Part shown: positions 17,443 to 60,400 of the stretch, piece after piece
Numbering within the stretch: position 1 is the first letter of the stretch
Layout: every line of letters begins with the position of its first letter
Assembly (NCBI GenBank): GCA_965113315.1
Contig: OZ220364.1
DNA: 64,000 nucleotides
Direction: 5' to 3' (one strand)
DNA from: Podarcis vaucheri
Taxonomy: Eukaryota
Made by a program: the position numbers and the translations under genes
Notes under the pieces: generated by a model
The model's input: only the letters and a program-made list of their open reading frames with translations
Told to the model about the DNA's origin: nothing
The model's database searches: none

Positions 17443-17444
<2 letters not shown>

Positions 17445-20002
17445 CTCCAGATGCACATAAGGCTTTTTTTTTTAACTGAAATGTGGCCATACCAGTCTTG
17501 CTCAAGGGAAAGAAGCATGAGGAGAATGGAAAAGTTGTCACTGGACAAGGGGCTAAAATGCTTTGAAATTTCAGAAGACTTAGCCCACCATGCCCAAGTG
17601 TTTCTCCACAATGGGAGGGACAAGACAGTTACTTTTTATTTTAATGGAAGTTGAAGTTCATTATCCGATATGATGCTTGCTCAGCGATGTTTATGCACGT
17701 GCAGACGGAGGTGAGGACCAGCTAAAATGAGAAACATTTCGTTCTAGACTATGAAGTCAACTGCTTTTATGCAGTACGTTTTAATGCTTTTGTTTTGTTT
17801 TGTTTTGGTTTTAACTTTTGTTAACTGCTCTGGGAACTGATGAGGTAGAAAGCTCTAAAATAAATAAATAAAATAGAAATAGGAATCAGGTAACCAATTC
17901 ATTGTGTTGGACAACTGAAAGGTATCAGATATTGTGGTGGCCCCATTATCCTCTTGTGTGTCCTGGGCATCAAAATTGAAGTTGTTTTTTGCTATACTAG
18001 CCAGATAACTTGAAGCGGATGATGTCAAATTATATGTGAGATTCAGTCTAACAAAGTTAGAACTTTGGGCAAAAGATTTATTAAAAATGGCAAAGTTCAC
18101 CCAACAGATCACATCCACTCTCTGCTTTCAAACCAGATGACAACATCTGATAGCATATTCAATTAATTGATTTGTTTTCCCTTTAGAATGCTTTGCTAAA
18201 GAATTGCATCACCATGCTAAAAAATTGAGGGCTCATGTGAGTAGTTAAAATGACTAGTTTAAGAATGTAAGTTGTGTGTTATCTTTGTCATTACTGTCAT
18301 GGAACCAAATGCTAAGAACATTTAATGTTTAAAATTAGAATGGGTTGTGTACAGCAAAAGTGTAGAAGACAAATGGAACTATTCTGACTACTTGTGACTA
18401 CAGAAAAAGTTACAACCACATCCAGATTGTTAACAAGAATAATTATATACAGAAAATTTCAGTAGTACTTAGCAATATCCAATGTTGATCATACTTGTAA
18501 CTGACCCATTGAAATCAACTATTATGTGTATAACTTAGTTGGATATTATCCATTAGTTCTAGATCTTGAAAGTACTGTTAAAGTTTAAGGTGACTTGCTT
18601 CATACACTGATCTCTATATGTATCAGTTCTCACCAGCCCTTTATAATCAAATATTAATGAAGCTTTAAAATAAAAAATATAATTATTTGGGAATCAAGGA
18701 GGATGCATTTTGAGTAGTCTTGTGCCTTTGATCTGCATCACCTCAATAATGATAAAAAATGCATAGTTCCAATGGTAAAAGTTTGATACAAATGGAAATG
18801 AACACTGAATTAACTGGATGTTTAGTTGCCAAAACGCTGTCCCTGTTTTTTGGCACTACATGTAACAAAGGTCTAGATCACCTTATCAGTACAATGTATC
18901 TTGACTGCACAGTAAAAAAATCTATTTGCCTTATAATTAATACCTGCTTTTAAAAAGTTAAATATATGTGAGAGTTGATTGAACTGCCAATTGGTATACT
19001 TGTACAATTAAGGAAACATCTACTTGCTTTTAGTTGTATGGCTATTTGAAATCAATCCAAACATTGTATCAGTGAAACATTCTAGAGTGCCATTAGAACT
19101 TTAATTTTTCTTTAAAAAATATTCTGTGCTTTGATGAACTGCTTATTGACTTCATCTCTGAGGTCACGTAAGGTCATAGTAAAAATCAACCGAGTAAAGT
19201 GCTCCAGCTAGGTGAGTTAACAATAAAAGCCACACTGCACTTTGTAGCAGAATAACTCGACAGTTGCATTTAACAAAATTCACTTAAAGAAACCCAAAGT
19301 ATACATTGTGTGTGTGGGGAGAGAATACTGCTCATAAAAGATGTTAAAAAAAAAACTAGCAGGAGCATTTCTCAGCATTTCCACATGCAAGGGATAGAAC
19401 AAATAAAATGATAATAATAGTAACAGTAATAAAAAGGGTGGATATAAACAGTACTGTATATTGTTTGAATACAGCCCTTGTGCAGAGGTTATACCCTTCA
19501 GTGACCTTCTAGTATTGTGTCAGCTTGCTACATGCATGTCTTCATAGTCCAAACATGTGTGAAAGAGACCATTCGTCTACAGAACGTTGGATTTCTTTTT
19601 GGTATCGCTGGAACTGGGACAGCAGACATTTATAACTGCCACATTGGAAATTAAAAGTTACTTAAACGTAAAATCACATAAAAGATATGTCCAGGGTAAG
19701 ATTTGCCATAAGGCTATAGAATAAATTATGAGATCTTCCACACATGCTTTTGGTACCCAGGCATGAGCCAAAAGCAGTGCACAAAAGCTTTCCACGTGAA
19801 ATAAATAAATAAAAAATAAATAAATAAAAATAGTGTCAATGATGATTAACTTTTAAAGAAGGAAATCAAAGAGAGTGTCTAGGTGGGGGGGAAAGGACAC
19901 CCGGTCAAACGTTTTAGATATATATATATGAAAATGAGTTTTGGAAAAAGGGGGACAAAAGAAAGATGGGCTATGATAAAATACAAAAGAACAAATACAA
20001 AC

Positions 20003-20101
20003 AGATGGACAAAGACACAGGTCCACTGAGGAATCTGGTACGAGGTTTGCTACTAGATTTATAGGTCACTCTCTCAGACGTTTGGTGGAAAACCGTCCAG
20101 C
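20003..20101 (-). CDS. WNK2: WNK2 99-nt cassette exon (GWTVFHQTSERVTYKSSSKPRTRFLSGPVSLSI), phase 1->1
   Basis: catttgcag|GCTGG...ATCT|gtttgt (weak donor); peptide matches recalled WNK2. Confidence 0.92.
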
Positions 20102-21063
20102 CTGCAAATGAATATAAAGGGAAGAAAACAAAGACACTTATAAAGTACAAATAGCTGAGATCAGTTGTCACCATCAGTCATATCAGCTTTGTTAGTTTAT
20201 CATCCACATCTCCATTTTAGCCTTGCCAAAGAGGAGTAAGTTCATTGGCTATATGCAAAAGGATGCAAAAAATAACAGCAGAAGAAAATAGATACTTTGT
20301 AGGATTAGTTTGGCAGGACATGCAGAACTGAGTAAAGTATTGTTTCTTTAATCATCATTACACTTTGCAACAAATATTGCTACACATATCGTGACTAATC
20401 TATGGAACTGTGCACTGCAAGATACGAATACTACAATTATATGAAACTGTGTCTCAAATGAGATAGAGATCTTCTAGTGAAGCCAGAAACCCATGAGAAT
20501 AATGGAACTAACTTGCAAGGTGGTAAAAGCTTAATTGCTCCCATGCTATATTTGCATAGGCCCAATATGAAAGAATGTCTTAGGAACAAAATTCTGCACC
20601 AGATTTGGATCTAAGAATATGGACCAAAAGAAAAGTAAGCCAGCCTTTCCCTCCTACCAAATTGTTTAAATGTACAAAGGACCATTTCCTTATTTTTTTA
20701 AAAAAAGATGTACAATTCCTTGAAAACTAAGAAATGTGATACCTTCATTTTTCACACACTACTAACCTTTCAAATATTGCTCATTATCAAAAGATGCATT
20801 AATGACTTGGACATCTACAATTTCACGATAATTGAAGACCCATTATAATAATGTTATCATCACTATAGGACCCTTTCTGTTCTTATCACATTTATCCTAT
20901 TAACCGCTCTATAAAGACTGCGAGACGGTAACTTGCCCAAGTCAGTGCGCTGAGCAGCTATTTGAACCTGCAACTCCCAACGTCATACAAATTCACTTTT
21001 AATGTTGAAATAATTGCTAATTTCAGTATAGAAGGAATGATGACCCCAAGTATATAGAATCAC

Positions 21064-21279
21064 CTTGGGCAGAATTTTCATGGGCATCGCCTCCCTCAGT
21101 AGCTAATCCAGAGCAGATGTCAGTGGACAAGGAAGCCTTGACAGAGCAGGGCTGCTGGGTCTGAACGGACTTTCCAAGTATGGCGGATGTGGACGAAGTT
21201 AGTGCCGCCGCTTCAGTAGAACCAGTTTGAGCTTTAGCATTTTCTTTAGCCAGAGTGTCTTTGCAGTCTGATACACTAC
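21064..21279 (-). CDS. WNK2: WNK2 exon (…KSVQTQQPCSVKASLSTDICSG…), phase 1->1
   Basis: ccttttttag|GTAGTG...CAAG|gtgatt; 216 nt. Confidence 0.93.
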
Positions 21280-23419
21280 CTAAAAAAGGAGACATGCAAA
21301 AATCACCAAACGCCAAGAAATAAGATTGGCTGCCAACTAGCAGGTCATTACTGAAGAACGCTTCAAATATTTTGAAGCAGTGCAAGAAGTCTACAGCTGC
21401 ATGAAGCTGCACAGTTGAAGCACTTCCAACTGCAGGTAACCAACCTGCTGTTCAGCTTGCAAGTGTTGATGCCAATATAATATGAAATAAAACTGACAGC
21501 AGCTTTACAATAAAGTAGCTTTAAAACAGTAGCTGTACAATAGGCCCATAGCTAAGCTAAGCTATGGGCCTTTAGCTAAGCTATGGGCCTACAGATATCC
21601 TTGGACTACAATTCCTATGATCCCTGACCAGTAGTGGGTGGCATAGTGGTACTCACCTGATCTCCCAACAGCTGAATCACTTCTCCTTACCAAGAAGGAG
21701 AAGGTGAGGAGGTGGGAAGTTTGGCACAATGCAAACACACCAGCAAAACCAATCTAGTGTTTGCACCATGCTGACCTTCCTACCACCTCACCCTGGCACC
21801 ACCTTCTAGTAAACAGCAGTGATTAAGTTGTCAATGGGTCAGGCGAGTGGTCATGTGGTCATGCTGGCTGTAAACAATAGAAGTTGGTCCAACAAAATTT
21901 GCAGAGCCACCCCATTTTACATTTTTTGGACATAAGCTATGTTTGTATGCTGACTAACCCCACTGAATGCAGTGAGATTTTACATCTGAGTAGACCTACA
22001 TAGGATTATTGATGGATGCCATGGCTGAGAGCTACATTAGGTGATGGCAAAGGTTTTTCAGGACTTTTCCATTGCCATATCCAAACTATTTTTAAAAAGG
22101 TGTATTTTAGAAATCTGGTGTATGTATGTGTTTGTGAAAGACTGCTGTTTGGGAAACACAAGATGAAAACCCCAATGGGCACATAAAATGGGGACACAAA
22201 ACAGTGTTGTTATTGTCTGGATTTTTTAAGAGACTTGAAAGAGTTACTCGTGGCCTCGTCCTACACATGACCACTCAGAAATAACTAAAAGTTTATGCAA
22301 TGGGATTCACTCCCAAGTAGGTACATAAAGGATTAAAGTCTTAGTCCATCCAGAGTCTGGGCGGAATGCACCCCCCCCCAGCCACCCAAACTTAAACCCA
22401 TTTTCACAGGAACTCATCTGGCCTTCCCTTAAAATGATCTCCAGGGAAAGGAGAGACCATCACTTCCCTGAAGAAGCTTGCTTCATTTCCCAACATCCTA
22501 TGAATGAATAACCCTAGAAGAAGAAAAAACTGGATAAAGGGCAGAGATGAAACTGCACTTCTGCATTGTGAGAAAAAAAGCAATACTGCTCACCTGGGTT
22601 GAGGGCAGTTGGGGGGAAGACTGAAAGGAATCATTTCAGAAAAACAGTGCAAGATTGAGCCACTCTATCAGATGGAATGGCTGAGCAAAACCCGTCCTCC
22701 CTTTCTCCAGGAACTACAATGGCCTTCACATTTAAGTAGAAATTAGTCAGAAATAAAAATTAAAATACTGAATTTCATTGTCCCATTTTCTGGAGAACAG
22801 AGATTAGGGAGAAAAGATGGTCTTCACCTATCAACTTTTATGCAATGAGTAGGTGTGGTAATGAATATATTAAAGAGTTTTACAAGGATTCTTTCCCTCT
22901 GCCCCCAATTTACTTTAAAACTGCTGACAGTGGTTGGAAACCTATGGGATGGAAGCAAAAAATCCCCATGTAAACAAGTTTCAAACACAAAAAGTTCATA
23001 ACTTAGTATAGAAAAATGCTACAGCATTTTCTATGCAAAGGTTGTAGGGAAGATGCCCCACATCAGCTACAGCAAAGACTGCGGGAAGTGGGCGATTCCC
23101 AAGGGTAGCCCATTCTTCCTTTTGGGCAGACAAAAATGAGAGGTGGGAACATGCAATTTAAAAGGTGCTTTTTAATATCACCCATCATATCTTCAGCCTG
23201 GTATACAGAAATAATAAAACAAATGTTAAAAAGGTAAGTCATCTACCCCATTCCACTAGGAGAAGCCAGTGCAAGGGGGCTTGGCTCCCATACCCCACAC
23301 CCCTCCCTCAAATCTACTCTTGGAAGATTCCACAGAACAGTGTGAGGTGTGGAGGACGGCATTCTATCAGCAATCTCCTCAGCACTACATTGAGTTCCAA
23401 GTCCACTCATCCTTTCGGT

Positions 23420-24160
23420 GAGGCAGTGTTGAAGGACAGCAGAGGTTCCACCACACCCCCTGATGAGAGAATCCTAACATCAGTGCCCCTTCCTGATAGG
23501 TGGCATGGGCATAAGCCTGAGCCACCTATCAGGAGCCGGATCCTGGCCTGCATCCCGGTTTGGTGAATGGGGATGCAGGCTAGGACATGGGCTTGGCGAG
23601 GGAGTGGAGCGGGTGGAGCAGGAAGGCTTCCCTTGGGTCCGCTCCCTGGCCATTTAAACGGCCCACACCTGGGGCCCTACCTGCTTTTCCCTCGTCGGGT
23701 TCCTCACCCTTGGTTCAAGTTGATAGTCAAGGACTTTGCTGTGGTCGCCATTTTATGGGGCTGGGTAGGACTTTGTCCACCGGGCAAATTGGCTCCAACC
23801 TGGTGGTTTTGCCTACCTCATAGCAATCGTCGCAACTGAGTTGGGCATTGGGACAATCCTTTGTCTTGGATGGAGAGGGGGTTGTAGTTTCTGCCTGCTG
23901 CTCCAAACGCTGGGGTATCCCGTTAAAGGGATTTGGGGGTCACCCTATTTGATGTAAGTCTTAGGAACCCCTGCCTGGATTGACCTATGTGTAACTTCCA
24001 GTGGGCAGGCCGGAAGTATTTTGATTGTCCCATGCCCAAGCCAAACCTCTTTCATCTGTATTCAATAAAGTTGTGGCCTGTTTCGATCCAAACCCAGTCT
24101 CAGTGGTCTTTTATTTATCTGAGGTTGGGGAACGGGGAGCACAATGCCTGGACCCGCAAC
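23420..24160 (+). mobile_element. GC-rich retroelement terminal-repeat-like segment (LTR or DIRS/Ngaro-like; family uncertain)
   Basis: Abrupt GC-rich block; caataaagttgtggcc...ttatttatc...gacccgcaa end is shared with 31460-31775. Confidence 0.5.
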
Positions 24161-24994
24161 TACTGAAATCAATGCACATAATGTGGTCATGTTCATTCAT
24201 ATCAGTGGGTCTATTTTGTGTAAAAAATAGTTGGATACCACCCAACAGAAACAAAAAGCAACTAAATCATAAAACAGTCTGTAGGGTTTTAAAGTGCATT
24301 ATGAGAATTAGGGTGGTCCCCCCCCATTATTTCTTTTAACAAAAAAATGGTGTTTTGCTATTACTGATGTTAATATAAATATATCCTATATAGGTACTGC
24401 CACATGTGGAGGAACTTGAATGCCATGCTTCTTCTGTGCCCATGCCACCCTCCCCATGCCTACTAATGGCTTGGTGTGCCAAGGGGAAGAAAGACATAAG
24501 CAGAACTCTATCGGGCCTGGTGCTTCCCCAGTACTGAGCTGGATCATGCTCAGACCATAGAGACTAAGCTGCAACCAGGCAGAAGAATACCATTTTCTAA
24601 TCAAGACACAGTCTTATACCTATAAATAAGGTTTTACAAATGTTTCCGTATGCTGTTGCTGCAGTGGTGTTTAATGTTGCTTCAGTGCTGGATTTACGTG
24701 TTAATTTACGCAACAGGAAAATGTGCTAAAGGTCAATTTAAGTAAATCCATTTTAACAGGCCTTCGTTTGTTCTGGGGTCAAATAGGGCAAATGTAAAAA
24801 CAAAAACAAAAAACCCACTGCCTTACAAAACAGTCCTCAATTTGAAATCTTGAGTCTCTCTGCGAGAACAATGCAAATGTAAAACTGACACAGATGCTTT
24901 TCACTACACATCATGTGCACTTCATAAACATGTGGCAGCAAAAGGATAGCACTGGTAAAGTTACTCATAGGAGAAAGTTATCTGATGTACGTAC

Positions 24995-25209
24995 TTGTAC
25001 TGGATGTTGTTGTTTTGAGCTGTTGAACAACAGGATTTATTAATTTCCCAGTTTTTAATTTGCTCTTGCTGGTTCTTCGTCGACGGCCAGTTGGCGGGGC
25101 AGAATGAAGGAACCCGATATTTGGTGGTAAAGGCTTCCCCAGTCGGATGTACAGGGCTTCTATTTCTTTCTTCTGCTGAGTCTGCAGCTCAGTAATTTCT
25201 TTCATGTGT
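24995..25209 (-). CDS. WNK2: WNK2 exon, C-terminal coiled coil (HQ motif), phase 2->1
   Basis: ttctacag|ACACATG...ACAA|gtacgt; HMKEITELQTQQKKEIEALYIRLGKPLPP. Confidence 0.96.
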
Positions 25210-25253
25210 CTGTAGAACAGAAACAGGTTGTTACATCAAATTCAAAGTGCTGC

Positions 25254-25255
<2 letters not shown>

Positions 25256-25294
<39 letters not shown>
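25256..25294. repeat. (TG)n microsatellite
   Basis: Direct observation. Confidence 0.97.
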
Positions 25295-25295
<1 letters not shown>

Positions 25296-25828
25296 GGAAA
25301 AGGCTCAGAAAAGGGCAACGAAAATAATCAAGGGGATGGAGCAACTCCCCTATGAAGAAAGGTTGCAACTTTTTAGTTTAGAGAAAAGGTGAATAAGAGG
25401 TGACCTGATAGACATTTATAAAATGATGCAGAAAGCACATAGAGAAAAGTTTTCCTCCCTCTCTCATAACACAAGAACTCATGGACTACTGATGAAGCTG
25501 AATGTTGGAAGATTCAGGACAGAGAAAATAAATGCCTTCTTCACACGGCGCACAGCTGAACAATGGGACTCACTCCAACAGCGATGGTCACCAAGCTGGA
25601 TGGTTTTGAAAGAGGATTAGACAGATTTAAGTAGGAAAAGGCTATGGGATGTTACTAGCCATGATGGCTATGCTCTGCCTCCACAGTTGCAGTTGAATAC
25701 TTGTTGCTGGAAACCACAGGAGGGGCGAGTGCTTGGATCCTGCCTGCAGGTTTCCCACAGGCTTCTGTTTGGCAGCTGTAAGAACAGGATTCTGCACTAG
25801 ATGGGTCATTTGCCTGATCCAGAAGGCC
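25295..25828 (+). mobile_element. CR1 LINE 3' fragment (decayed ORF2 C-terminus plus 3' UTR)
   Basis: LEKAQKRATKIIKGMEQLPYEERL-like and RTHG..MKLNVGRFRT..FFT motifs typical of the CR1 ORF2 end. Confidence 0.9.
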
Positions 25829-26059
25829 GTGTGCATGTGTGTGCGTGCGTGTGCGTAAAACACCCATCCACCCACCCACCCACCCACCGAGAGAGCATAT
25901 GCCTAATATATAATTTGTACATAGTATCCACATTAGGATCACAGGCAGTCTTTTTCATGCACACTGCATGAGATATGTCCCAACCTCTGAGTTAAGCAAA
26001 TATTTCAATAGAAAACCAGTCATATGATACCACCTTGGACACACACACAAACTCCTGTG

Positions 26060-26990
26060 TAGGAAAAGAAAAGGAGGCATGACCACGAAGGCTATTAAAA
26101 GTTAATACTGAAAAGTTTGTGCATGATGCAGGAGTAGACAGGAAGCCAGTGCAGAGCTTTAAAAAGGAATGACACACGAGAAGAGCAATGAAAAGGGTGA
26201 ATTATTTTGAAAGAGTATGGAATAGAGGTGAGGGGACCAAGTTAAGAAAATGGAAAACCAAACAGGAGAAGGTTGCAGTAGTCATGGTAAGAAATAGTGG
26301 TGGATTAGCTGGAGGTGCACTGGTCCAGGATGCCAGGATTGAACAACTAATTGAATAGTCCTGGTTGCTCCTCCTTTTCTGTGGCTGTAGGCGACCAAAA
26401 CAGGGTGGTACTGGTAGCAACTACAGAATAGTAAAACCCAGCTGGCAGCACTGCAGGGCTGTTGGGCAGCTGTTGGACAAGAAATAGGTGTGCAAGGCTT
26501 TCCTGAGCATCCTCCCTTTCTCCACAAGTAAATTACTGGTGATTTGGGTGAAAGGAGCATTAGTGAAATGCTGAAGGTGGCCACCGTTGGGAGAAAGGGT
26601 GGTGTAGAAATTAAGTAATTAAATAAATGTAATGTAATGTGATCACAACAGCAGAGTTGGAGGAAACAAAGTAAGAAGCAAGCTGAAATACGCAAAAAGG
26701 AGGAGTTAAAGGTCAGAAGAGAAATTGGAGAGGGAGACTGGGATAAGAAATTGGGTGAAGAGTGGCATATATGAATACAGAAGGGGAGGAGTTAGATGAA
26801 AGGCGTAGGTTGATACTGTGATGGAAAGGAGGAGAAATGACAAAGAAGATGGCTATGTGGTTTTAGAAGAGGACAGGATCAAAGCTTCACATGAAATTAG
26901 ATGAGGGCAACAGAATAGTGAGAGAAGGAGGAACAGTTTTAGGGGCATGTGGGGGGGGGGCTGGAAGACGTATCCTGTTAATGGAAAGAA
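26060..26990 (-). mobile_element. Decayed L2-like LINE fragment
   Basis: Purine-skewed block; the minus strand has a LKALHWLPV-like remnant (aggaagccagtgcagagcttt on plus). Confidence 0.55.
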
Positions 26991-27202
26991 AAACTGTGTT
27001 TACTTTATATTAAGCTAACATCCACAAGTGTCATGGATCATGATGACCTTATTGCTTCTCAGATGTTCTGATATAGGCCTAGTTCTTACTGTGTTGGGAC
27101 TCTACCACTTCAGACTAAGTGTGAGGTTCATATAACAATTCTATCTTCAACAATGGAAAACACCTATAAAATAAAGAGAAGGGGGATAAGCTGCTCCAAC
27201 TG

Positions 27203-27450
27203 AAGAACATAAACCAGAGCCTGCTAAACCAGCCACTGGGTCCACCCTCCATTTCTCACAGTCGCCAACCAGATGCCCATGGGAAGTCTGCAAGCAGGAC
27301 CTGAGCACAACAGCCCTCTCCTCTCCTGAATTCCAGCAACTGCTATTCAGAGGCATGCTGCCTCTTAACAATAGAGGTAGAACATAGGCATCAGTGTTAG
27401 CAGCTACTGACAGCCTCCATGTATTTGTCTAATCCTCCTTTGAAGCCATC
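27203..27450 (-). mobile_element. CR1 3' UTR fragment
   Basis: Reverse-complement similarity to 25620-25828. Confidence 0.75.
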
Positions 27451-27675
27451 CTTCAACCTCAGCCCTTCACCTTTAACCTTACGTGATGCCGTCCAGATAC
27501 TTGACTGCCAGCTCGGGAGAACTAGGCCAAAGGAAGGAAGTTGATTTACTTAGACTATCAAGCGACTCCAACTTGTAATAAACGCGCAGGAAAGAAACAG
27601 AAACGGATTAAATGCTGTAAAAATATCACAAACGCACAAAATGACACCAGACATTCTGATGGAAATGAAACATAC

Positions 27676-28292
27676 TTTTCCCTCAGGTGCTGCAATTCTT
27701 TCTTCATGTCTGCATCTTCAAACTCTGAGTCATTGTCACTGCTCACATATGATGATTGTGAATGGAAAGAAGTTATGTTGATGGTTGGGATTTTTGATCC
27801 ATGACCATTAGGAGAATCAAGGCCTTGTGAACTGGACTTTCCAGACTTTTGCAGAAAAGATGAGGTCTTTTTCACGTAGTCATTTCCTGCACTACTGCTC
27901 TGTGGTGATGGTGGAGCTGCAGATGGTTTCCTTTGAAGAGATTCATCACCAGAATCACTAGAATCCTGACCACAAAGTACATCAATAGAGGATGCTGTCT
28001 GCACACGCCGCAAAGAAGTCTTCATATCAGGGCTAGAAGGTTGATCATCTAGATAAACATCTGGTGGTGCAGAGTATCTCAAGGAATGCACAGGTGGTAA
28101 AGTTAACTCATCCTGTGTACTGACCACTGAAAATCTGCCAATAGTTTTTGCTGGTGTGCTGTCGTGTGTGTCAGCTTGTTTCTCACTACAGCTTGAGTCC
28201 ACAGAGTCATCCTTTTCAGATTTACTTTTCTCTTCAAGTAACGGCGCAGTATTTTCCTTTTCACTCCTCATAGAAGCATCTTTCTGAGCAAC
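27676..28292 (-). CDS. WNK2: WNK2 exon with RFxV SPAK/OSR1-docking motif (GRFSV) and start of C-terminal coiled coil, phase 0->2
   Basis: ttacttcag|GTTGCT...GAAAA|gtatgt; PAKTIGRFSVVSTQDE...SSDNDSEFEDADMKKELQHLREK. Confidence 0.95.
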
Positions 28293-32759: not shown

Positions 32760-33662
32760 TTCACTTGTTACTTTGCCCCAAATTCTTCCCAGGGCGAGAT
32801 TAGGAGCAGATGTCTGATTTGTGCACGCCTCTCCTCACTTCTATCACTACAGGAAGAAGTTAATCAATGTACTGATAAATGTGTTTATCAGAACAGGAAA
32901 TCTTCCTTGGGAAACAGAACCCACTAGAAAGGGGCAAAAGATATTGCAGAGTCAATATCTACATGCAGACTTCTTCATTAGACTTGGGGGGAAGGAAGAG
33001 CACAGAATTCCTACCTTGATCTCACCTTTGGCAAAATCCTATACATCAAATAATGAGCAGCCAGCCAAATGAGAGAAATAAGGCTATGAATGCAATATAC
33101 CTTATTTTCATTCTCATATTCCAATAAGCAATTTCTTAGTTGAAAAAAAATGTTAAGTTTAAAATAAGGCTTGGTTTCACCAATGTTCAGAAAGTAAGGG
33201 CCAATGGTAACAACACATTAGAATTTATTTTGATCATGGGCACCAGATTTTTCTCTCTGTGCATAGAACTTTTGAGTGGAGGAGGAAGTAAAGTTTACTT
33301 TAAAAAAAATAATAATTAAGAGGACTTTGTACTATCTTGGTAGTTAGACCTCAAATACCCTGAAACATAATGCACCCCTCTCAAATGACAAATTTGTTTT
33401 TTGTCTCTTAAGGATAATGACAGTGAGTTTGCAATGTTTGATGAAGGCATGTATTGTACACCACAAAGAAAGAATATTTTTAAAATTTGCACCAATAACT
33501 GAGAACCATGTATTTGCTTTGTGAAGCAGACCACACAGCATAACAAGGGCAATAGTTTGAAAAAGGCTACCATCGGCTCTTCGTTTCTGAATTCTGGTTT
33601 ACAAGGCCCATAAACTGCAGCACTCTTAGCAGAGGTTTGCATGATTTCTGTGTCAGTGGTAC

Positions 33663-34735
33663 CACAGGCACCACAGCCACAGGTTGACTTGCCGGAACAG
33701 GAGACGTGGTGAGTTCAGGTTGATCCTCAGCTGACTTAACATCCATGCCAGCTGCAGGAACTTTCAGGTCCAACACAAGCGCAGGCAAAGGTGCCAAGTT
33801 AAATTCACCATCTCCTTGGTCTATAGGTACAAAGCTGTCCGGTGTTGCTGCAGATGCAGAAGATGTCGGGACATACTCCTGGTAGAGCAAGTTGCGCAGC
33901 TTCTCATCCAGACTCTTTATTGTGTTGTCAGCAAAATCAACTCTTGGTGGCCCTTCACCGTCTGATTCTACAGCACAAGGCGGCTGAGGAGCGCTAACTG
34001 CAAGGCCAGTGGATGACGCGGGCTGGGACTGGGCTTGTAACTGGGATGTAGCTGCTGATGAGTGAGGGGGACTTGAAAGCTGAGGTGCTACTGGAATCAG
34101 AGGATCAGGGACAGCAGACACAGGAGCTGCCTGGCTTGCAAAAGAAGGAGGCATCTGACTAGGCTGACTGCTGTCTGGCAAGCTGAGGATTTGTGTTGGA
34201 GGCTGGTGTTCCAAAATAGTCGCATCAGAGACAGCAGGGAGTGGGTGGGCTTCTGCTGCCTGTGCAGGAACAGTCTGGATCGGCTCTGGCAGCCCAGCAG
34301 TGCCCTGTTCAGCCTCTGTCTCAGGGACACAAGGGTTTTCATCTATTCGTTGGAGTGCCTGCAATGGGGGATTTAGAGGAAGCTGAGCCTCAGGACGTTC
34401 TTCGAGTGAAGTTGCACTGGGGGCAGCAGGTGTACCAGGCTGACTGGATGCAACAGGCTGTTGTTGCGGAGGGTACTCTGGTTGGCCTGTGTTGTCAGCA
34501 ACCTGTTCTGGAGCACATGGAGCCGTCACTGGGGGTGTTGCAGTGGATGTTTCTGGCTGGACCTGTGGAAGGGTGGTTGGTGCTGCAGTGGAGACTTGTG
34601 TCAGAGGAGCAGGAGCAGGAGTTGCTTTGGGGCTGTCCGTGGCACTCCTTTGACTTGAAAGCTGCTGATGGGCTGTGTTTGTGGGTTTGTCTGTTGCTGT
34701 AGAGCTCTGCTGCTGATCATCTGACTGTTCTACAT
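33663..34735 (-). CDS. WNK2: WNK2 large Pro/Ser/Gln-rich exon including ESDGEGPP...[15 protein letters not shown], phase 1->0 (3' boundary uncertain)
   Basis: ttatttacag|ATGTAG...; frame is continuous with ORF 33567..34529; best in-phase donor is CCTGTG|gtacca. Confidence 0.88.
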
Positions 34736-35689
34736 CTGTAAATAACAGAAAAGGAAACCCTGAGTTCAGAGAATGGCACTTCCGTTTGTAGCCTCAAATG
34801 GAGCCTCAAACATATGACCAGAAATGTAAGAGCAGAATGATAAAATGCTTTAAACAGCTGACGTGCTCTCCTTGTCTTAAAGCAGTTTTAAAACAGATGA
34901 TTTTCTGTATGTAAACAAGAATATTGTGTACATTTTGTTTTACATCTACAGCTAAAACGTGATCATAACGACAGGCTACTCTCGCTTACTATAACAGCTA
35001 TATATAGCAATTTTTCTAATGCAAGATGTATTGCCCCTTATTGGCTATTAGTAGTAATGATGCACTGCCCCATTTCAACCAACTGGAAAATTGAGATTAA
35101 TAACAAGGTGGTGCATGCATTACAGAGTCTTTAAAATTCATTTATGTGACAGGAACTTCAATTACATCTACGCATGTAAAACAAAAAGGATCAAGTTCAA
35201 TGTTCATAAATGCGTACTCTTTTGTAGCAAGGTTTTGACACTAATTTGCCTCTAACTTGTTCTGCTTGCCCTTGGCTATTCCAATTCTCTTGAGTAATGA
35301 ATGATTGAAATAAATGCCTTTTCCGGGGAAAGCTAATTGCTACTTTAAAGCTATGGGACCCACACATTTGTGGATGGCTTCTGCGTGCAACTGCCTCTGC
35401 ATTATTGATTGTGGCCCATCAAACCCTGGTGACAAAAGAAATGAAAATCCTGAAGATGGTATCTTAAATAACTCCAAATATATTTTTATTGGCCACGTAG
35501 TTAGTTTTAAATGCTTTCCTGCTATATCTTTTCACTTTCCCATGTGTTTCCTTTTTGAAAAATAGTAAATGAGGTTTTAAAAGGTAGCGAGTTTTCTCTT
35601 ATGCTATGATTTTTGTGTAAGTGCCTGGAAGGACAGGAACATATAGGAATTCTATGATTTGTTCTTAAATCTTTAAAGTTCTCAAGTAC

Positions 35690-45694: not shown

Positions 45695-45853
45695 NNNNNN
45701 NNNNNNNNNNNNNNNNNNNNNNNNNNNNNNNNNNNNNNNNNNNNNNNNNNNNNNNNNNNNNNNNNNNNNNNNNNNNNNNNNNNNNNNNNNNNNNNNNNNN
45801 NNNNNNNNNNNNNNNNNNNNNNNNNNNNNNNNNNNNNNNNNNNNNNNNNNNNN
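45695..45853. other. Assembly gap (159 N)
   Basis: Run of n. Confidence 1.
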
Positions 45854-51422: not shown

Positions 51423-52176
51423 CTGGTAGAGAGAAAAAGAGAGTACACCGTAAGTTCCCAAAGTGCTCTGGCCATGGGGGATAATTTATTTGTCATAGGC
51501 ACTACCTGATACCTCAACATAGGTGTCAACAACAAGAACTCTCTTTACCAGCTTAAGTGCTAAGAAAACAATAAATTAACACTGTTAAGAGAAAAGTTGA
51601 GGGGGGAAATCCATGTAGTCTAGGAAAAGCCGTCGTCTACCACCTGCAGACTGGCTGAATCATGCCATAGTGATGTAGCGCCATTCCATTGTGCATTGTG
51701 TCCCAGGACTGCACCAGAGGAGCAGCATGTTCCGATTCCACATCCCCCACAGAAAGTCACCAACTACCTCCCCGTTTTTGTGAGAAATGAAGCAACCTGG
51801 GAAACTGCAGAGGCGCTATCTGGGTCAGTACTAGGTAGGTCACTCAAAGTTATGATGGATGAAAACCTTATTTTCCATCTCCAAAGAATGAAATGTATCC
51901 TCTCCTCCTGGTCATGGAAGAAAATTGAGGAGATGAGCTGCGGAAAGGACCGCAGGTAGGGATGGAGGCTTAAAAATTCAGTGCTCCCTGTCTTTCTTGC
52001 ATATTAAATGGATGCAGCACAATTATAATAACTCATTTTAGAATTTGAGCACTGCATTTGAAGATTACACCACACTTGTAATAATGCACAAGCAGGCTTG
52101 ATATAAAGGGTAATAAAACACCCCTATGTTTATTCAGCATCTTCACTTAAAAGCAAAACAACCACTAACTACTTAC

Positions 52177-52329
52177 CTGCTGGCTGGCTAACACAGGCTG
52201 TGATTGTCTCATCTGGACAGGGGCAACGGAGGTGGGATGGACGAGAGGGAATGGGATTGCTGGTTCTTGATAATGTTGTGGTCGCTGAGAGACAACAGCA
52301 GGTGGAGCCTGAACCACTGGAAGTCCAGG
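52177..52329 (-). CDS. WNK2: WNK2 proline-rich exon (51 aa), phase 0->0
   Basis: ttcccttcag|CCTGGA...CAGCAG|gtaagt; PGLPVVQAPPAVVSQRPQHYQEPAIPF...ASQQ. Confidence 0.88.
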
Positions 52330-53701
52330 CTGAAGGGAAGAAAGAGGGGGGGGGACTACTTTAGAAAACTACAAGCTACAAAAATTATTGGCTGTCAGGA
52401 CAGCCAGGTTGTGTTGTGAATCACTCCTTAATGGCAATCTCGTAGCTGTTCAAGAAGTGAGGCCCATAAACTGAGTGGACCTTTTCCTATGGTAAGCAGT
52501 GATGACAAAACTCAACACCCAAGTTTTGTAATCCATACTTGGTATAAAATACAGAAAAGAAGACACAGGAGTTACAACTGAAAGGATGGAACGAAGCTGC
52601 TGGAACCTCAATTCCAGTGCTGTGATCCTATGAATACCTTGAATACAGTATACTCAAAATGTGTCCACAAGAAACAATAACAATGTATGCATACATGCCA
52701 AGAACATAACCTGCTGGTGCAGTAAATGTTTACTGGAGATTTCCCTCCTTCCCTTGTAAGTGGGCAAGGAGATTTCTTTCTTTCTCTTTTTCTAAAAAAA
52801 ATCTTTAATAAGTATGAGCATTGGAGCAGAAAGTCACAGATGGCTTTCTGTTTTTTACAGCCTTCATTTACACTGTTCTCTGCCTTTACAATGCCCAAGC
52901 TGGCTGGTGTCATGGTGTCCACTGTTTCCACCAAGGCATGCAAACTTGCTACTCGAGCAATTAGCACTAAACGGAGGCAATTATCTTATGCCTGTGAGAC
53001 AAGGCAAGAATGGGATGAGACGTTATTTATTTATTTTACAACTGATGCAATCTGCCTTTTAGCCCATTATGGCTCACAAGAGAAGTATATTAAAATATGA
53101 ACATTCAAACAAACAAATATTCACACTAAAGCAACTAGCAATAAAAGCAAGGTTGTAAAACCCAAGCATATTGCGTGATGCCTATACTTCCCTTTTCCCT
53201 ATGACTCAGATGACAGGTGTGGGAAAACCCTGGAAGCATGATTATGTTACTGAGAAATGGTAGGGGGACTGAAGGGTAGGGGGAAAGAGAGTGGAGAGGA
53301 AACTGAGGCATGCTGACCTACACTGAATCTCCAAGTCACCACCAACAGTTCCTAGCAGTTCCACATGAAGGTAAATAATGTATTTACAGTGCAGTAGTGA
53401 CCATTTATTTCTTGGGATTGTCAGAATGAGTCAAACCAGATGTGGGACAGGAGATTTGCCATTAGATCTCCTGACCTTTTGACTGTGTACATATTACTGG
53501 CTTAAAACACAGAAAGGCTCATACTTATTTTCAATTCAGACTGAAGCTGGTTTTGGGGTGGAAATGCATCAGAACACAGTGTTTCAGAATAAATGACAGG
53601 ATAGATATGGATTGTGGCTAACTGCTTCTCAAACCAGAAGTGGATGCAATATAAATGGGAGTGTGTACACAGCCTTCCTTAAACCAACAAAAGCAAGCAA
53701 G

Positions 53702-53703
<2 letters not shown>

Positions 53704-53734
<31 letters not shown>
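53704..53734. repeat. (GT)n microsatellite
   Basis: Direct observation. Confidence 0.97.
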
Positions 53735-53735
<1 letters not shown>

Positions 53736-55493
53736 AATTTGAGCAGGACCAGTTACAAGGGTAAGGGGGATTAACTTCACATATGCCAAAATTCCCCTCC
53801 CTGCAAAAGCTAATATTTCCCCCCTACATGATGTCTAAACATACAGCCTACTTTTCAACTATCTTCCTTTTGTGGATGGTGGTTTTTGTTTTTTAAAGGA
53901 AATGCTGGAGCATCCCATCTAGTTGGACTCTAAGATGTTATGGGAGGGCGGGGGAGAAGGTGATAAAGCAGAGAGCAGGCACACTAGGGCATCCACGCAC
54001 CAGTCAGATTACAGAATAATGTTTAGTTTTTAAAAGGAGAGGTGTCAAAGACTCAACCCTTTCTGAGAACATTTTCACTATTCCCAAAATGTATGGCAGA
54101 GTGTGGACTGGTTGTGGTGAGGGGAAATCATTCCATTCATTCTCTCCAGGGCACTGAAAAGTAATAAAAGAAGAGCCCCATGAGCTGATGCCTGCCCACA
54201 GCATATTTCCTACCCCGACTGTAACTTTGGCGGTTGGGCACTAATGCCTTAGAGAAGTCTTGTTTATTCACTAGACTCCACTACCTGAACAGCTTACGCA
54301 ACCATGAAAAATGCATAAACAAAAATGACTTTAAAGAAAACAGAATTGAAACACATAAAGCACACTTTACATTTTCATGAAAGGCAGGCAAGTGATTAAA
54401 AACAGCTGATAAACTTTGGGGGAGGAGGGGATTTGCAACTAAAAGCATGCTGTAACACATTAGGAAAGGGAGAAGTTACTACATATGTGAGTTGCTTTAT
54501 ATTTTTATGAATGAATAAAAAACAGCCATGTTAGCACTAGGTAGTCTACGAGTCGATAAAGAGCAGCTTTTTTTCAGAAATAAAAATGGCTAGCCGAAAA
54601 CAAATAATGGCTTGTTAAAAAAAAAATAGTATTGTTATTTTTTTACAGAAAGGCAGGAACTCTCTACAAAACATCAGAATGTATGTGGCTGGATGCTGAA
54701 TGAAAACTTGATGAGTTAAAAGTCATATTACAAAGGATGACTTATAGCACTTTTCTTTGTAAGTGATTAATAGGAATATGTTATATGTCAAAAAGACCTC
54801 ATTAAAGCATAATGTCATCTATTTGAAGTCTTACTCTGATGTAAACGGTGTTGAAGAAAAAAATGAAACACAACTGATCAAATATAAATAATTGTTGTGA
54901 TGACTAAAATTAAGCAAAGTGCATCTTTATGAAAAAGTATTTTGCTTTTTAAGAGTTTCCATTTAGATAAAAAAAGCAATAACCAATGTTTCTCACAAAT
55001 GTCAAGTTAAAAGTATTTTGCTTTTTAAAGCTATCAGGAGTGTCACATCCATACTTCACAACTGAAAATCAAATGTTGGGTGGGCACTGAGGCAGCCAGC
55101 TACATTGCTGAATTTTGCAATTGCACAAAGTTGCAGGCCTTTTGCTTTATATAATAAAGCAGCAACATAAGATTAAAACTTAAAAGGAGGGTAGTACATT
55201 TATCTGAGGAACCGTTGCAACAACAAAGGAAGGCTGGTACAATCACCAAAGCTATTCCCCTCCCCCGGGTTAAGAAAGTGATGCTGTCATGGAATTCATG
55301 GGACCATACAAACTAAGTACACCTTAGGTTTTATTACAGGCATTTTGGAGAGAGAAAAGGGAAAAGTAGGGCAAGCATGATTTTTCTAACTGATTCAAAG
55401 TCATTCCGGGTCAAAGAGGATGCATTCAGTATCATTCTTGGAATTGTTCGATCTTCTAAGTCAAGTGAGGAAGCAATGAGGCATTCCACCTAC

Positions 55494-56510
55494 CACAGCT
55501 CTGGCATCTTTTTTACAAGCTAGGCTTCTCCCAATGTTTGGTAGGCCTTGAGTCAGGTAGTCATTCTGCATCACTGAAGTCTGATCTGGACCAAGCTTGT
55601 GGCAACACTGGGTACATTCTGCCTTGCTGGCTTGTTCAGAAATAAATTCTGAACATGGGGTTTTCATAGGCGTGCCTGCTGTTTTTACTGAGGCAGAGCT
55701 ATTTTGTGGGTTAATTAGATGCTGCACAGATTCATTTAATAAAGGCAGGTCTAAACTTTTGCCATAAAGCTTACTAGTTTCGTGATGTGGTTGAGATGCA
55801 GAGCTGGTTTTTAGACTATTGCAGAGGACGGAAGGAATGTGTATAGCACATTTAAGAGGCATTAATAATTCAGTTTTGTTCAGATCTGCTCCAGAATGCA
55901 GCAGATGAGCCAAGCACTCGTGGCAGGTTGGTTTAATGAGCATAAACTCGGCAGAATTTGAAGACTTCCACAATCCCGGTAGCTGTGATTCACTGGTTTC
56001 ATTTTCCTTCTCCTGCAATGGCTTTAGGCTTGATCCCAGCAGTTCTGCTGTGAGAGGCATCGCATTTGGTGTCAAAGCCACCACTGAATCACTATGGCGA
56101 CGGCAGCTGAAGGAACTGCTGTGCAACGCAGGTAGCAAATACTGTTGAGTACAGAAGCACTGTGTCCCAGGGGTCTCTGAGGAGGAGCACACAAGACACG
56201 TGCCAGCTTTGTCATTGAATAAGACTGAAGGTTCGTGTTCGGCTTCTCGCTGTTCTTCTTGCAGTAGCAGTTCCATTAATTTTTGCTGGTTGTTGAAACA
56301 GGAGCATGAGAGCAAGTGTGAATGACTTCCTAGGTACTGGTTGTTAGATTTAGGAGCTTCTACAACAGAAGTGCTTCTTCGCCTCTCTGAAATATTCAGC
56401 CCAACGAAAGAGCTACACAGGTACTGAACAGATGCCTGCCCTTCAGAACAGCTGGAAGAAATATCTGACCCGAAAGATTCTCGAGAAAATGAAGGAACAA
56501 TAATATGTGG
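55494..56510 (-). CDS. WNK2: Putative large alternative cassette exon of WNK2, HSN2-like (339 aa), phase 0->0
   Basis: ttttctcgctgtctctatag|CCACAT...GCTGTG|gtaggt; 1017 nt without a stop. The frame opens exactly at the acceptor and closes 33 nt after the donor. Contains ISERRRSTSVVEA. Confidence 0.8.
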
Positions 56511-56690
56511 CTATAGAGACAGCGAGAAAACACAACAAATGAGAGAATGCTTAAAACAATAACGTTTAGGGTTCTAATTTGGTTACAGTTAAAGTAAAAC
56601 ACATTTGGGTTGAATTAAATGTATTGTACCTGCTTAGTTTGTTAGAGTACACAGCTAAAGCAAACATACATACTGAGTAGATAAGCAATA

Positions 56691-57105
56691 CAGTGGTGCC
56701 CCGCAAGACGAATGCCTCGCAATACAAAAAACTCGCTAGACGAAAGTTTTTTCCGTTCGCGATTTGCCTCGCAAGACGAATTTCCCCTATGGGCTTGCTT
56801 CGCAAGACGAAAACGTCTCGCGACTTTTTTTCTTTGACTAAAAACAAAGACATGTTTTGTTTATAAAGTTAATTTATTTTCCCTTAAATTTTTGAACTGC
56901 TCTTTACAGTATGTGTGACTTTAAAGAGCAGTTAATAAACTGTTGTTGTACCAAATTTGGCTTTGTTTGGACTTCTTTTGACCATAGGAACGCATTAATT
57001 GATTTTCAATGCATTCCTATGGGATTTCGTGCTTCGCAAGACGAAAAATTCGCTAGACGACAAAAATTGCGGAGCGAATTAATTTCGTCTTGCGGGGCAC
57101 CACTG
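56691..57105. mobile_element. Tc1/mariner (Tigger-like) MITE
   Basis: Perfect 22-bp TIR CAGTGGTGCCCCGCAAGACGAA, TA TSD, internal cgcaagacgaa subrepeats. Confidence 0.92.
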
Positions 57106-57266
57106 TATGTGTTTTTATGGCACCAATTCATATATATGGGGGAGCTTCATATATTCATGTGGGGAAACTGGACTCAGAGTCTAGAATCTGAAAAAGAATT
57201 TGTTCTTAAAGGTTATATGTGGGGATCCATAAATACAAAGTATTTTAAGGAAACTGTTATGCTTAC

Positions 57267-57463
57267 AACTGAAGGCTGCTGGTAGGGTCCCAGCTGCTGA
57301 AGACCATGGGGCAAAGTCTGGTTTTCGCTGAGAGGTGGGCTATAAACCCGCTGAATTGCAGGAGGTATTGCATCAGGCATAGATGAGTAGATGACACTTT
57401 GCTGGCTGCTCTGGGAGTCTGAATACACGGTTGATCCCTGCCCACTGTCGAATGTGCTATCCG
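57267..57463 (-). CDS. WNK2: WNK2 exon (DSTFDSGQGSTVYSDSQ; acidic/KLHL3-degron-adjacent region), phase 1->0
   Basis: ccttcag|CGGAT...TCAGTT|gtaagc; 197 nt; continues the previous exon's frame. Confidence 0.95.
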
Positions 57464-60400
57464 CTGAAGGATGATTGGGGGGGGAAATAAAGGGTGTGTT
57501 AAAAATCAAAGGAAATTAGTTCTGATCCCCAACTCACTGATGTCCCAGCTAGCCTGCAACAATGCAATGCCTATGTAATATCACAGCCTGTGCAATGGTG
57601 TGCTAGTGCAGTAGCCCATATACCTTCTCCTAAAATTATAATGCATTTATCAGCTTGCACAGCATGTCTCAGAATTGGCCCACTGCTCAAATTCACTTTA
57701 GTTGTTATACACTAAATGGATGTTGGGTTACTTTCTCTACCAATTTTCTCATTGCCATCTTTATCTGGATAGAGCCATACTGAAAAATTCATGTCAAGGC
57801 TAGCATGTTTTGCTCGTTTATGTCTACCAAACACTATTACAGGCCCATAGCACAGTGGATTTGATTATGATTTCAACTTGACATGAGTTAGCTGAACACC
57901 ATGCTGGAATATTTTTTCTCTCCTGTATTTTTAATTCTCTTTTATTCAGTGATGATATTACAAATTCCAAGGGGCCATATATACAGGACTGAAGCAGTCA
58001 AGTGTGCTAGAATTTTGTTACTGCAAATTTCCTCTAAGGTAGGTGTGGAATTAGGGGAAAATATTAAATGTAGGAGTGGGATGGACGGATGGATGAAAGG
58101 AAGGAACTGTTCAGCAGCCTGCTTGCATACTCCCCTGCTTAAATCAGCCTTTATGCTTTGACTTTATAGGAAATCATCATGGCCATAGCATGTCATTCAA
58201 GTCAATCTTAATGTGGAGTATTCAATAGATATTTATTGGTGCAGTCCAAAGTCCTGGTCATGCTGACACTACAATCTCTTTTCTATACAGCTCAGCGATT
58301 TGAATGTTGGTGATTCTGTGTTATATTTCCTCTGCTCATAGAGGGAGCAAATAAGCATAGAATATGGGCTGCATGCAAAAGAAGTGTGAGCAGACTCCGG
58401 CTTACTAATGTCCATTAGCAAAATATTTTTTTATATATATACTTTTAGTAATGCTGATGGACATGTAGTAGAAAAAAACAAAAGTAATTTGGGGATATTA
58501 CTTTCTGAGTGATAGAAATACAAAGAGTTCTTTGTTCTATTGTTATTTATTGCTGGGAGAAAACAACTTAAGAATTAAAGTTCAAGTGCCACTTGCTCTG
58601 CAATGATACATGGCAAAGAACAGAGAATTTTCTAGTGAAAGAGTGAGTTCAGTTTACTTTATATCGGGGTGAAGAACCTCCAACCCAGGGGTCAGATCTG
58701 GTAAGGTTCCAATTTGGCCCACACCACCTTTCAACCCCAAACGATGCACACCTGACACCATATGTGGTCATATGTGTGGGGCTGTACAGACACAGCTGGA
58801 TTAGCTGCCCTACCAAGTTCGCTGCAAGGAGCTCAACCACATAGCCAATCCTTGCAGAAAGTAGTTTTGCTAGCCCTGTGCTTGATGCTTTTTCCAAGTA
58901 TAGGGCTGGCAAAGCCCCAAGTACTGCGGTCCCCAAGCACCCAACGGCCAGCTGGCTGTCAAGTACTTGGGAAGCACCATGGAAGAGACTTTGACAAGTG
59001 GGCAAGAGAATCTGCCTGTTAATGTCATAAGAACATCAGGTGACTGACAGGTCACTTGCCCAAGCTGGCCTGCAGAGTTGGGGGAGATAGTGGGCAAAGA
59101 AATTCCCAAACTCTGCTTTATACGAATGCTTCCTGCCCTAGTTTCTGCATTTACAAGGACACTAGCTTATTTAACCAAACCCTAAAGCAATTTGATCCCA
59201 GCTAACCAAGCAATTTTTTTCTCTGCCCCAATGGCCCTACTGATCTTGGCAGTGGCAGCAAAAAGAGGGGGGAGGGAATCGAAGCAGACACAGCACTAGG
59301 GAGGGCAGAGCCCAGGAACCTGACTATCAGATTGATCAGCTGATGAGCAGAGAATGGGCATCAGCCTGCCTTCTCAGCTGATGGGCTTTAAATATGTCTT
59401 TGGCGTGTGAAATGTTTAAACACTATGCTATGTTATTGTATAGCTGTTATCAACAGTCCAGCATCTCCAAGTTTGATAGAGTATTATATTAAATATAATA
59501 AACACAATATAATAAACATATTAAAATAGTTTCTCTTTACAAAGCAGAAAAAGGAACATATGCCACGCAATTCCTAACTGGAGCCAAAATCAAGATAAAG
59601 CTCAGGCTTAATAAAAGTATTTGGGAAGTTACATTTCTTCTGATTTTGGGGGATTCAGCTCTAGCTCTCATAGGTTTGGGCCAAATCGAACCATTAGCTG
59701 ATGAAAATTCACCATGGTCCAATCAATCTTCCTTTTAGTGGGGTGGGAGAAGCCACTTCAAACTTTGCTCATGTATTTGTTTATAAGCAAGACTCCATGT
59801 ATTTTATAATGTAGAGATGTTTACAGCATAGATATTTTAATCTATTACAGAAATTATTTGTAACCACAAATGTGGGGCTGGGGGGGGCTGGGAGTGTAAC
59901 TATACAGAGTTGAAGTAGCAGTAGGAAGCCAAGTCTAGATTTTTATGGCTCATCATGTCGTACAGAGATGCTAAATTATTTATCTTCATTTCTGCCTTCT
60001 TTGAGTATCACAGGCAGCGTAAAGGAAATTATTTATAGGGCTTTTAGACACAAAAGCACTATGCTACCATCCAAATAGCATATGATACTGGTGCTTTAAA
60101 GTACAGCAAAAAATAAAAATAAAAATGGAAGTGGTGGGATTAAACGGCATCTTATTTTTAAACATATTTATGTTTTGTAAGCAGCTCTCATTGAATAATT
60201 ATTTTATAGCTAGATGTTTTAACTAATTTAGTTAAAATGTATATTGTTATTTGAGGTCTAGTTCTTATATTAGGAAATTCAATCTGTTTTACTGAAACAG
60301 AAAATTATAGTTGTCCATTATGATATTATTTCAGTTATTTCTGTAGTCAAAAATATTATGTCTCATCTTCGAATATAGTGGCCTACAAGCTTCAGCAATG

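Follow-up and report, generated by a model that had tools for sequence, protein, structure and literature searches.

A stretch of 64,000 nucleotides (nt) of Podarcis vaucheri DNA (contig OZ220364.1), referred to here as the window, contains on its minus strand a large alternative exon of the kinase gene WNK2, located at 56510-55494 in the intron that follows the exon known by its DSGQG sequence. Judging from its homologues, this unit is a genuine WNK2 coding exon, conserved for more than 400 million years. It is used in only some transcripts, and in the squamate tissues sampled it is missing from most of them. The account that we favour, and hold to be probable, is that of an ancient, alternatively used WNK2 exon which operates here as a composite, mainly alternative last exon. 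A preliminary description of the window, made from the sequence alone, had proposed instead a cassette exon paralogous to HSN2, the large alternative exon of WNK1.

The architecture of the exon is well defined. On the minus strand, the acceptor at 56510 reads ...ttttctcgctgtctctatag/CCACAT and the donor at 55494 reads ...GCTGTG/gtaggt, the slash marking here and below the exon boundary, and the 1017 nt enclosed between them are translated without any stop into 339 codons. The frame opens exactly at the acceptor, because the TAG of the acceptor closes it upstream. Since the available list of open reading frames (ORFs) begins each entry at the first start codon, it gives just 55461-56315. In total the open stretch comprises 349 codons, as it proceeds for 10 codons beyond the donor to a TGA at 55463-55461. 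This exceeds every value obtained in 200 shuffles of the window, in which the longest open stretch had a mean of 149 codons and a maximum of 246, and the sole longer open stretch within the window is a WNK2 exon of 408 codons at 33570-34793. The upstream exon (57463-57267) finishes at a codon boundary and the downstream exon (52329-52177) begins at one; therefore, inclusion and skipping each preserve the frame. The preliminary description was accurate on all of these details, namely the exon-shaped unit of 1017 nt, its acceptor and donor, phase 0-0, the 339 codons and the partial ORF listing, and translation likewise confirms its reading of residues 40-52 as ISERRRSTSVVEA at 56393-56355.

Homologues of the exon were sought with phmmer, using the exon peptide alone as query in an exhaustive search of 1.84 billion (1.84e9) representative proteins at E<=0.001. 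Ten relatives were retrieved, all of them short ORFs without a name, predicted on contigs of public assemblies. P0001 matched best (1e-75, 55% identical), followed by P0002; P0003 was matched over the whole exon, from QEPLGSE... to ...DVVG (3e-40), and the sturgeon ORF P0009 was matched at E=3.1e-5. The cluster of P0009 includes P0028, a WNK model of 1967 residues from Acipenser sinensis in which the exon is internal (...YPQPPA/RHSSVPAIVQEPF...RRSNM/PGFSMIQNP), and a region search with the P0028 protein led to WNK2 isoform X3 of Lepisosteus oculatus (NCBI), to WNK2 of Atractosteus and to WNK2 isoforms X1 and X2 of Amia ocellicauda. Specifically, the exon stands at the same position in the WNK2 proteins of sturgeon (P0028), gar (P0029), bowfin (P0031/P0032) and tarpon (P0044), and recognisable versions occupy this position in WNK2 of osteoglossomorphs too (Paramormyrops and Scleropages, P0073/P0086) and of percomorphs (Chaetodon and Mugil, P0066/P0068). 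In the window the exon is placed between the DSGQG exon and an exon of the PG(L/F) type, and fish WNK2 proteins show matching flanks (...YPQPPA/RHSSVP...RRSNM/PGFSMIQ). Among the homologues of the DSGQG exon and of the alternative exon, all that bear a name are labelled WNK2 (NCBI or UniRef), and on these sequence relationships the gene in the window is WNK2.

The fish cassette, known from predicted isoforms, and the reptile exon belong to the same gene and to the same intron after the DSGQG exon, with the donor in the same place. They have in common the block order RRxSTS..EAPKS, RRHSDS, CxxC, CxC, DLSLLHESLHHII, and in both cases an isoform or transcript devoid of the exon exists too, although the two are only 22-26% identical. 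As these ordered blocks are common to ray-finned fish and the reptile, the exon is no younger than the last ancestor shared by all bony vertebrates, which bears out the ancient origin supposed for it in the preliminary description. Isoform X3 of Amia (P0034) lacks the exon (...YQQPPA/PSFAMAP...), and the exon is therefore an annotated cassette in this fish. Moreover, the alligator-gar model P0030 reads through the donor (...RLSIM/VGNSK...), so that the donor position equals that of the window, and the donor GT(A/G)GGT is conserved across the homologues, being read through as 'VG' in every ORF match. The exon is thus already machine-annotated in fish isoforms, and no description of it was found in the literature searched; the suggestion that it might stand unlabelled in predicted isoforms holds for fish (Amia X1/X2, Lepisosteus X3, sturgeon, tarpon and teleosts). 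In the word-seeded protein searches only fish WNK2 appeared among the matches listed (at least 120 for the DSGQG core), blanks in these searches being uninformative on tetrapod WNK2 isoforms or WNK1: with the gar exon as query, a search at E<=10 failed to recover even those tarpon and teleost proteins in which the exon is known to be present.

The expression of the exon can be followed in thirteen small contig sets that hold parts of it, most from organism A and one each from organisms B and C, which are RNA-derived because spliced joints are present in them. Runs X1 and X2 (organism A), X5 (organism B) and the raw-read run X22 were compared with positions 52100-57600 of the window (5501 letters); the contigs are assemblies, not reads, and conserved exons may be filtered out of them. 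In run X5, a contig of 1769 nt (depth 11.3, shorter side 191 nt) contains the joint 57267->56510, exactly at the predicted acceptor and as anticipated from the sequence, and inclusion is the only form assembled across this junction, with no skip form. In the main WNK2 contigs of organism A the skip joint 57267->52329 is found, at depth 36 in run X1 and 94 in run X2. The inclusion level differs strongly between samples.

What happens at the other end of the exon is distinctive. No joint from 55494 (55494->52329) is present in the four runs, from whose contigs rare forms are dropped, and three contigs from three samples and two related species cross 55494 unbroken: 55125-55637 in run X1, 55190-55806 in run X2 and 54957-56510 in run X5, the last being colinear from 56510 via 55494 to 54957. 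The donor-crossing contigs of runs X1 and X2 have a depth of 4.8-8.5, and in these two runs the transcribed region is a discrete block from ~56441 to 55125, unjoined to anything in those assemblies. Depth is absent at 53756-54859 in every run, below 55044 in runs X1 and X2 and, in run X5, on the next exon (52177-52329), holes in depth proving nothing in themselves; the raw-read run X22 has no reads on the exon. Transcription thus takes the form of a discrete block ending 300-540 nt past the donor and not of a uniformly retained intron of 3.2 kb. An alternative last exon accounts for the sampled RNA better than a cassette does, and the cassette use that the preliminary description had assumed for this lineage does not find correspondence in this RNA.

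On the proposed mechanism, the acceptor at 56510 would be used whenever the exon is included, and the RNA would then pass the conserved donor at 55494, meet a stop 10 codons on and end 300-540 nt further. Inclusion would add ~340 intrinsically disordered residues after the kinase and autoinhibitory domains, an insert predicted to carry two basophilic-kinase sites, a CxxC-helix, a CxC and the amphipathic helix DLxLLHESLxxII. The terminal form would consequently be a C-terminally truncated WNK2, in which the kinase is kept and the CCT-like domain, the coiled coil and the SPAK/OSR1-docking region are lost. The fish-type cassette use via the conserved donor probably survives in tissues outside the sample.

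The region downstream of the donor has several properties of a message end. The short peptide encoded past the donor resembles the tail of P0003 (VGKVLHLILT), which has its stop at the same position, and that of P0001 (VGAVPHLLVM...). After the stop, poly(A)-type hexamers are found at 55335-55330 (AATAAA), 55204-55199 (GATAAA) and 55151-55146 (TATAAA), and the contig of run X1 terminates 21 nt past the TATAAA. In these respects the exon resembles composite exons with intronic polyadenylation, as the RNA can pass its 5' splice site, a stop comes early, poly(A)-type hexamers follow and coverage ends inside the intron at a putative cleavage site. The contig of run X5 ends in 30 unaligned letters, the first of them at the edge of a local duplication of 76 bp. 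These letters are absent from the whole window and therefore do not represent a splice to another WNK2 exon; they are a difference between species. The transcribed post-stop stretch contains an exact 20-nt repeat (54933-54952 / 55009-55028, 76 bp apart), with a degenerate third copy at 55128-55151, and the organism-B contig stops matching at the edge of this repeat.

Several observations weigh against the account favoured here. The donor is conserved in every homologue and phase 0-0 is kept, as expected under selection for a cassette; fish WNK2 models use the exon in this way, and neural tissue with cassette use may be missing from the coded samples. In addition, no poly(A) tails are visible in the contigs, assemblies being unable to show a tail, and 4 of the 6 listed exon substitutions change a residue, so that constraint is not strong. 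The first of these points can be read as signs of a pure cassette, spliced at 56510 and at 55494 where needed, for example in sensory neurons, with the read-through contigs deriving from partly processed RNA. The matching donor position of fish WNK2 models, the conservation of GT(A/G)GGT in all homologues and the 0-0 phase of the exon all speak for such a cassette, as does HSN2, itself a cassette (PMC3365125). We nevertheless regard it as rather unlikely: a 55494->52329 joint is missing from four runs and three contigs cross the donor unbranched, depth stops 300-540 nt past the donor and leaves the 3.2-kb intron unfilled, and run X5 shows the inclusion contig alone, with no depth on the next exon.

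A relic exon in decay, weakly transcribed via leftover splice signals and deprived of function in this lineage, would account for the low inclusion in organism A (depth ~5-8 vs 36-94 for skipping), for the prevalence of non-synonymous changes among the listed substitutions (4/6) and for the existence of homologous ORFs with broken frames. It is, however, improbable, as the 339-codon frame is intact, all five conserved blocks are kept with respect to fish after more than 400 million years and inclusion is the only form assembled in run X5. Furthermore, the rate of divergence of the exon is close to that of the constitutive exons and several-fold lower than that of the sequence after the stop. 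In particular, run X1 differs from the window at 8/777 nt in the exon (1.0%), at 2/153 and 2/197 nt in the flanking constitutive exons and at no fewer than 11/369 nt (>=3%) in the post-stop stretch, and all four indels of the organism B contig (run X5) fall after the stop, with none in the 1017-nt frame. A proportion of 4/6 residue-changing substitutions is what moderate constraint on a disordered region would produce. The broken ORFs form a diverged group (P0004 and 14 cluster members, P0026, P0027 and P0008) that keeps the exon start QPHIIVPSF..., with frames truncated or shifted at differing places and a degraded RRxS (QRWQRTS, RCHSDP). As far as these sequences go, the exon seems to have decayed in one of the tetrapod lineages, and we would guess that this lineage is the mammals. 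P0026 has 434 residues, which happens to be the length published for the human HSN2 ORF as first described, and it is of the WNK2 type by its QPHIIVPSF start, as in the window.

Lastly, an independent transcription unit nested in the WNK2 intron and outside the WNK2 mRNA, to which the unjoined block ~56441-55125 of runs X1 and X2 might be ascribed, is most improbable, because the contig of run X5 joins the block to the DSGQG exon in frame at a canonical AG, the frame begins right at the acceptor and contains no start codon before residue 79, and fish models place the exon within WNK2.

The encoded peptide has no recognisable domain: a Pfam scan of the 339 residues gave no match and a look-alike search of the ESM Atlas no usable one. 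The AlphaFold2 model built on alignment A2 is disordered, with a mean predicted local distance difference test (pLDDT) score of 45.5, and includes just three short helices, at residues 71-91, 197-205 (the CxxC-LAHLL block) and 256-266 (the LLNESVQHLI block). Serine accounts for 15.6% of the residues and cysteine for 5.3%. A folded or zinc-binding domain was considered for the CxxC...CxC pattern, and the disordered model argues against it. On the basis of the model, the exon product is predicted to be a carrier of short linear motifs.

Conservation, assessed by local alignment of the exon-only peptides and from alignment A2, is concentrated in five colinear blocks that extend from fish to reptile, namely RRxSTS..EAPKS, RRHSDS, CxxC-LAHLL, CxC and DLxLLHESLxxII. 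The exon start is also conserved, as (R/H/K)-x-S-S-V-P-x-I-V-x-E-P..SDVSS.CS, and the ordered alignment shows in addition a cysteine cluster between RR-x-STS-(L/V/I)-(I/V)-EAPKS and RRHSDS-x-V. The first block has the form RR(G/R/S)STS(L/V/I)(I/V)EAPKS in gar, bowfin, tarpon, P0003 and the window, the CxxC block reads C-(Q/R/E)-A-C-L-A-H-L-L across homologues, and the nearly invariant residues are H139, S140, D141, C196, C199, L255, S261 and I266. The preliminary description had singled out RRxS(T)S..EA as the conserved core, and this motif, indeed kept from fish to reptile, turns out to be one of several.

Both of the most conserved motifs are of the R-R-x-S type. Phosphorylation of RRXS sites by PKA, PKC and SGK1 is documented for WNK4, where it switches kinase activity (PMC9496095). 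In both proteins the R-R-x-S motifs lie in disordered parts of a WNK kinase; the difference is that those of WNK4 are in constitutive N- and C-terminal regions and the predicted sites described here are in an alternative exon. By analogy, the RRxS sites may place exon-bearing WNK2 under the control of basophilic kinases of the PKA/SGK/PKC type.

The fish versions of the exon show some peculiarities of their own. Those of percomorphs are enlarged by tandem RRGSAP... modules, unlike the reptile exon. In P0068 (WNK2 isoform X2 of Mugil cephalus) the RRGS block and the following helix (RRGSAPAMD.QRAN.I.QLHALIQ.QRSISP) occur four times at residues 671-990, with a period of 80 residues, and Chaetodon P0066 has one copy of the module. 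The amplification of the RRGS and helix module alone in Mugil suggests that it is the working unit. Besides, several exon-bearing fish isoforms (P0029 vs P0030, and also P0044, P0066 and P0068) end the DSGQG exon early (...AGQQ/KNSS...) and skip ~40 residues (VCSPP...QPSA), an internal alternative donor being paired with the cassette; the contig of run X5, by contrast, uses the full upstream exon.

The possible kinship with HSN2 deserves separate consideration. HSN2 was first taken for an independent transcription unit nested in WNK1. Its loss causes a congenital absence of pain sensation, which to our knowledge holds for no other part of WNK1. For HSN2 the preliminary description gives a putative motif, ISQRRKSTSFLEA, about 40 residues into the exon; this string was not found in the literature searched. 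Within WNK2 the corresponding RRxSTS..EA motif is conserved. We take intron 8 of WNK1 to be the intron after the DSGQG-type exon or, in other words, exon 8 of WNK1 to be of the DSGQG type. It is in this intron 8 that HSN2 lies (PMC3365125, PMC3536653), and it is a cassette (PMC3365125) that exon 8b can accompany. HSN2, which exceeds 1 kb, and the WNK2 exon are both large alternative coding exons, neither with a known domain or motif; the WNK2 exon is large, frame-preserving, alternatively used and without a known domain, as an HSN2-type exon would be. The exhaustive phmmer search returned no HSN2-type sequence at E<=0.001 and matched only ORFs of the WNK2 type.

The comparison with HSN2 covered four zebrafish oligonucleotides printed in PMC3536653, which were translated. 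These oligonucleotides agree weakly with the WNK2 exon at three places. Specifically, one frame of the reverse primer gives RACLVPS, to be compared with the near-invariant C-(Q/R/E)-A-C-(L/I), a pattern found 7 times when eight fish WNK2 proteins (21,176 residues together) are searched, in 6 of the 7 cases at this very block; the zebrafish HSN2 exon starts with KYSFS after AG, compared with KNSSA or RHSSV in the WNK2 exon; and it ends in DA/GTATGT, compared with DV/GT. A rough post hoc estimate of the chance of such agreement is ~0.05, on the assumption that exon 8 of WNK1 is of the DSGQG type. In the literature naming WNK2 together with HSN2, mostly covered at the level of titles and abstracts, no report of a WNK2 counterpart of HSN2 was found, and in the literature searched the term 'HSN2-like' is applied to zebrafish wnk1b only. 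Taken together, the identification of the exon as the WNK2 counterpart of HSN2 is plausible, not demonstrated, and in our judgment rather probable.

WNK2 is the least studied neuronal WNK, and we know of no standard description of mammalian WNK2 that includes such an isoform. If the exon is a true paralogue of HSN2, a second copy evolving independently becomes available, and comparison across the paralogues can be used to pick out the key residues, which would be the two RRxS kinase sites, the CxxC/CxC cysteine pattern and the amphipathic helix; WNK2 would also possess a large regulated isoform, maybe a truncated one. More tentatively, and with less confidence than in the paralogy as such, the observations can be combined in a single picture. 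That is, the exon would be an HSN2 counterpart predating the WNK1/WNK2 duplication, its conserved blocks (RRxSTS..EA, RRHSDS, CxxC and the LLHESL helix) would be the functional core of HSN2, and as a message-ending composite exon it would give a truncated kinase that lacks the docking and coiled-coil regions of the C-terminus; the exon would also have decayed in one or more tetrapod lineages, possibly in mammals. Should the paralogy fail, an undescribed but machine-annotated alternative exon is left, of interest mainly for annotation. An unexplained 125-kDa form of WNK2 in mouse brain immunoprecipitates has been attributed to an unknown splice form (PMC3191056). A WNK2 ending at an exon of this position could have roughly this size, and the exon has maybe decayed in mouse.

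The coordinates of the exon, its motifs and its surroundings are collected in Table 1.

Table 1. Features of the alternative WNK2 exon and of its neighbourhood, numbered as in the window
Feature	Positions	Strand	Evidence or remarks
Upstream constitutive WNK2 exon (DSTFDSGQGSTVYSDSQSSQQ...QQPSV)	57267-57463	minus	Donor gtaagc; RNA contigs of runs X1, X2 and X5 end exactly at 57267
Polypyrimidine tract and AG acceptor, ttgttgtgttttctcgctgtctctatag/	56511-56545	minus	Sequence and RNA joint 57267->56510
Alternative coding exon, 1017 nt, 339 codons, phase 0-0	55494-56510	minus	Open frame; fish WNK2 homologues; transcribed in three runs
Block 1, ISERRRSTSVVEA(PKS), residues 40-52	56355-56393	minus	RRxS at residues 43-46 (56384-56373)
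Predicted helix, residues 71-91 (QQKLMELLLQEEQREAEHE)	56238-56300	minus	Best-predicted part; block mean pLDDT 75-83
Block 2, RRHS of CRRHSDSVVALTPN	56091-56102	minus	H139, S140 and D141 nearly invariant
Block 3, CxxC and short helix CHECLAHLLH	55896-55925	minus	C196 and C199 nearly invariant
Block 5, LDLPLLNESVQHLINP (fish: DLSLLHESLHHIISRKTS)	55713-55754	minus	Predicted helix, residues 256-266
Proposed donor gtaggt	55488-55493	minus	Conserved as 'VG' read-through; use unseen in RNA examined
Read-through tail VGGMPHCFLT and TGA stop (55463-55461)	55461-55493	minus	Tail resembles P0003 and P0001
Transcribed stretch after the stop, like a 3' untranslated region	54957-55460	minus	Contigs end at 55190 (X2), 55125 (X1) and 54957 (X5)
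Downstream constitutive WNK2 exon, cag/CCTGGA = PGLPVVQAPP...	52177-52329	minus	RNA joins it to 57267 in main transcripts

Elsewhere in the window, further minus-strand exons of WNK-family type are recognisable, namely an autoinhibitory-domain exon near 62 kb, a coiled-coil exon near 25 kb (HMKEITELQTQQKKEIEALY...GRRRRTSKSKL) and another near 13.5 kb. Inside the WNK2 gene, 159 N at 45695-45853 mark an assembly gap or masking. At 56516-57251, in the intron that separates the alternative exon from the DSGQG exon, lies a very high-copy element, on which RNA contig depth reaches ~12,000-28,000 in runs X1 and X2 and hundreds of raw reads fall in run X22, with opposite-strand joints and many loose ends at 56688/56689, 56823, 57028 and 57107. 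Rfam and tRNA scans matched no Rfam family and no tRNA-like gene in this element, which is probably an abundant transcribed interspersed repeat.

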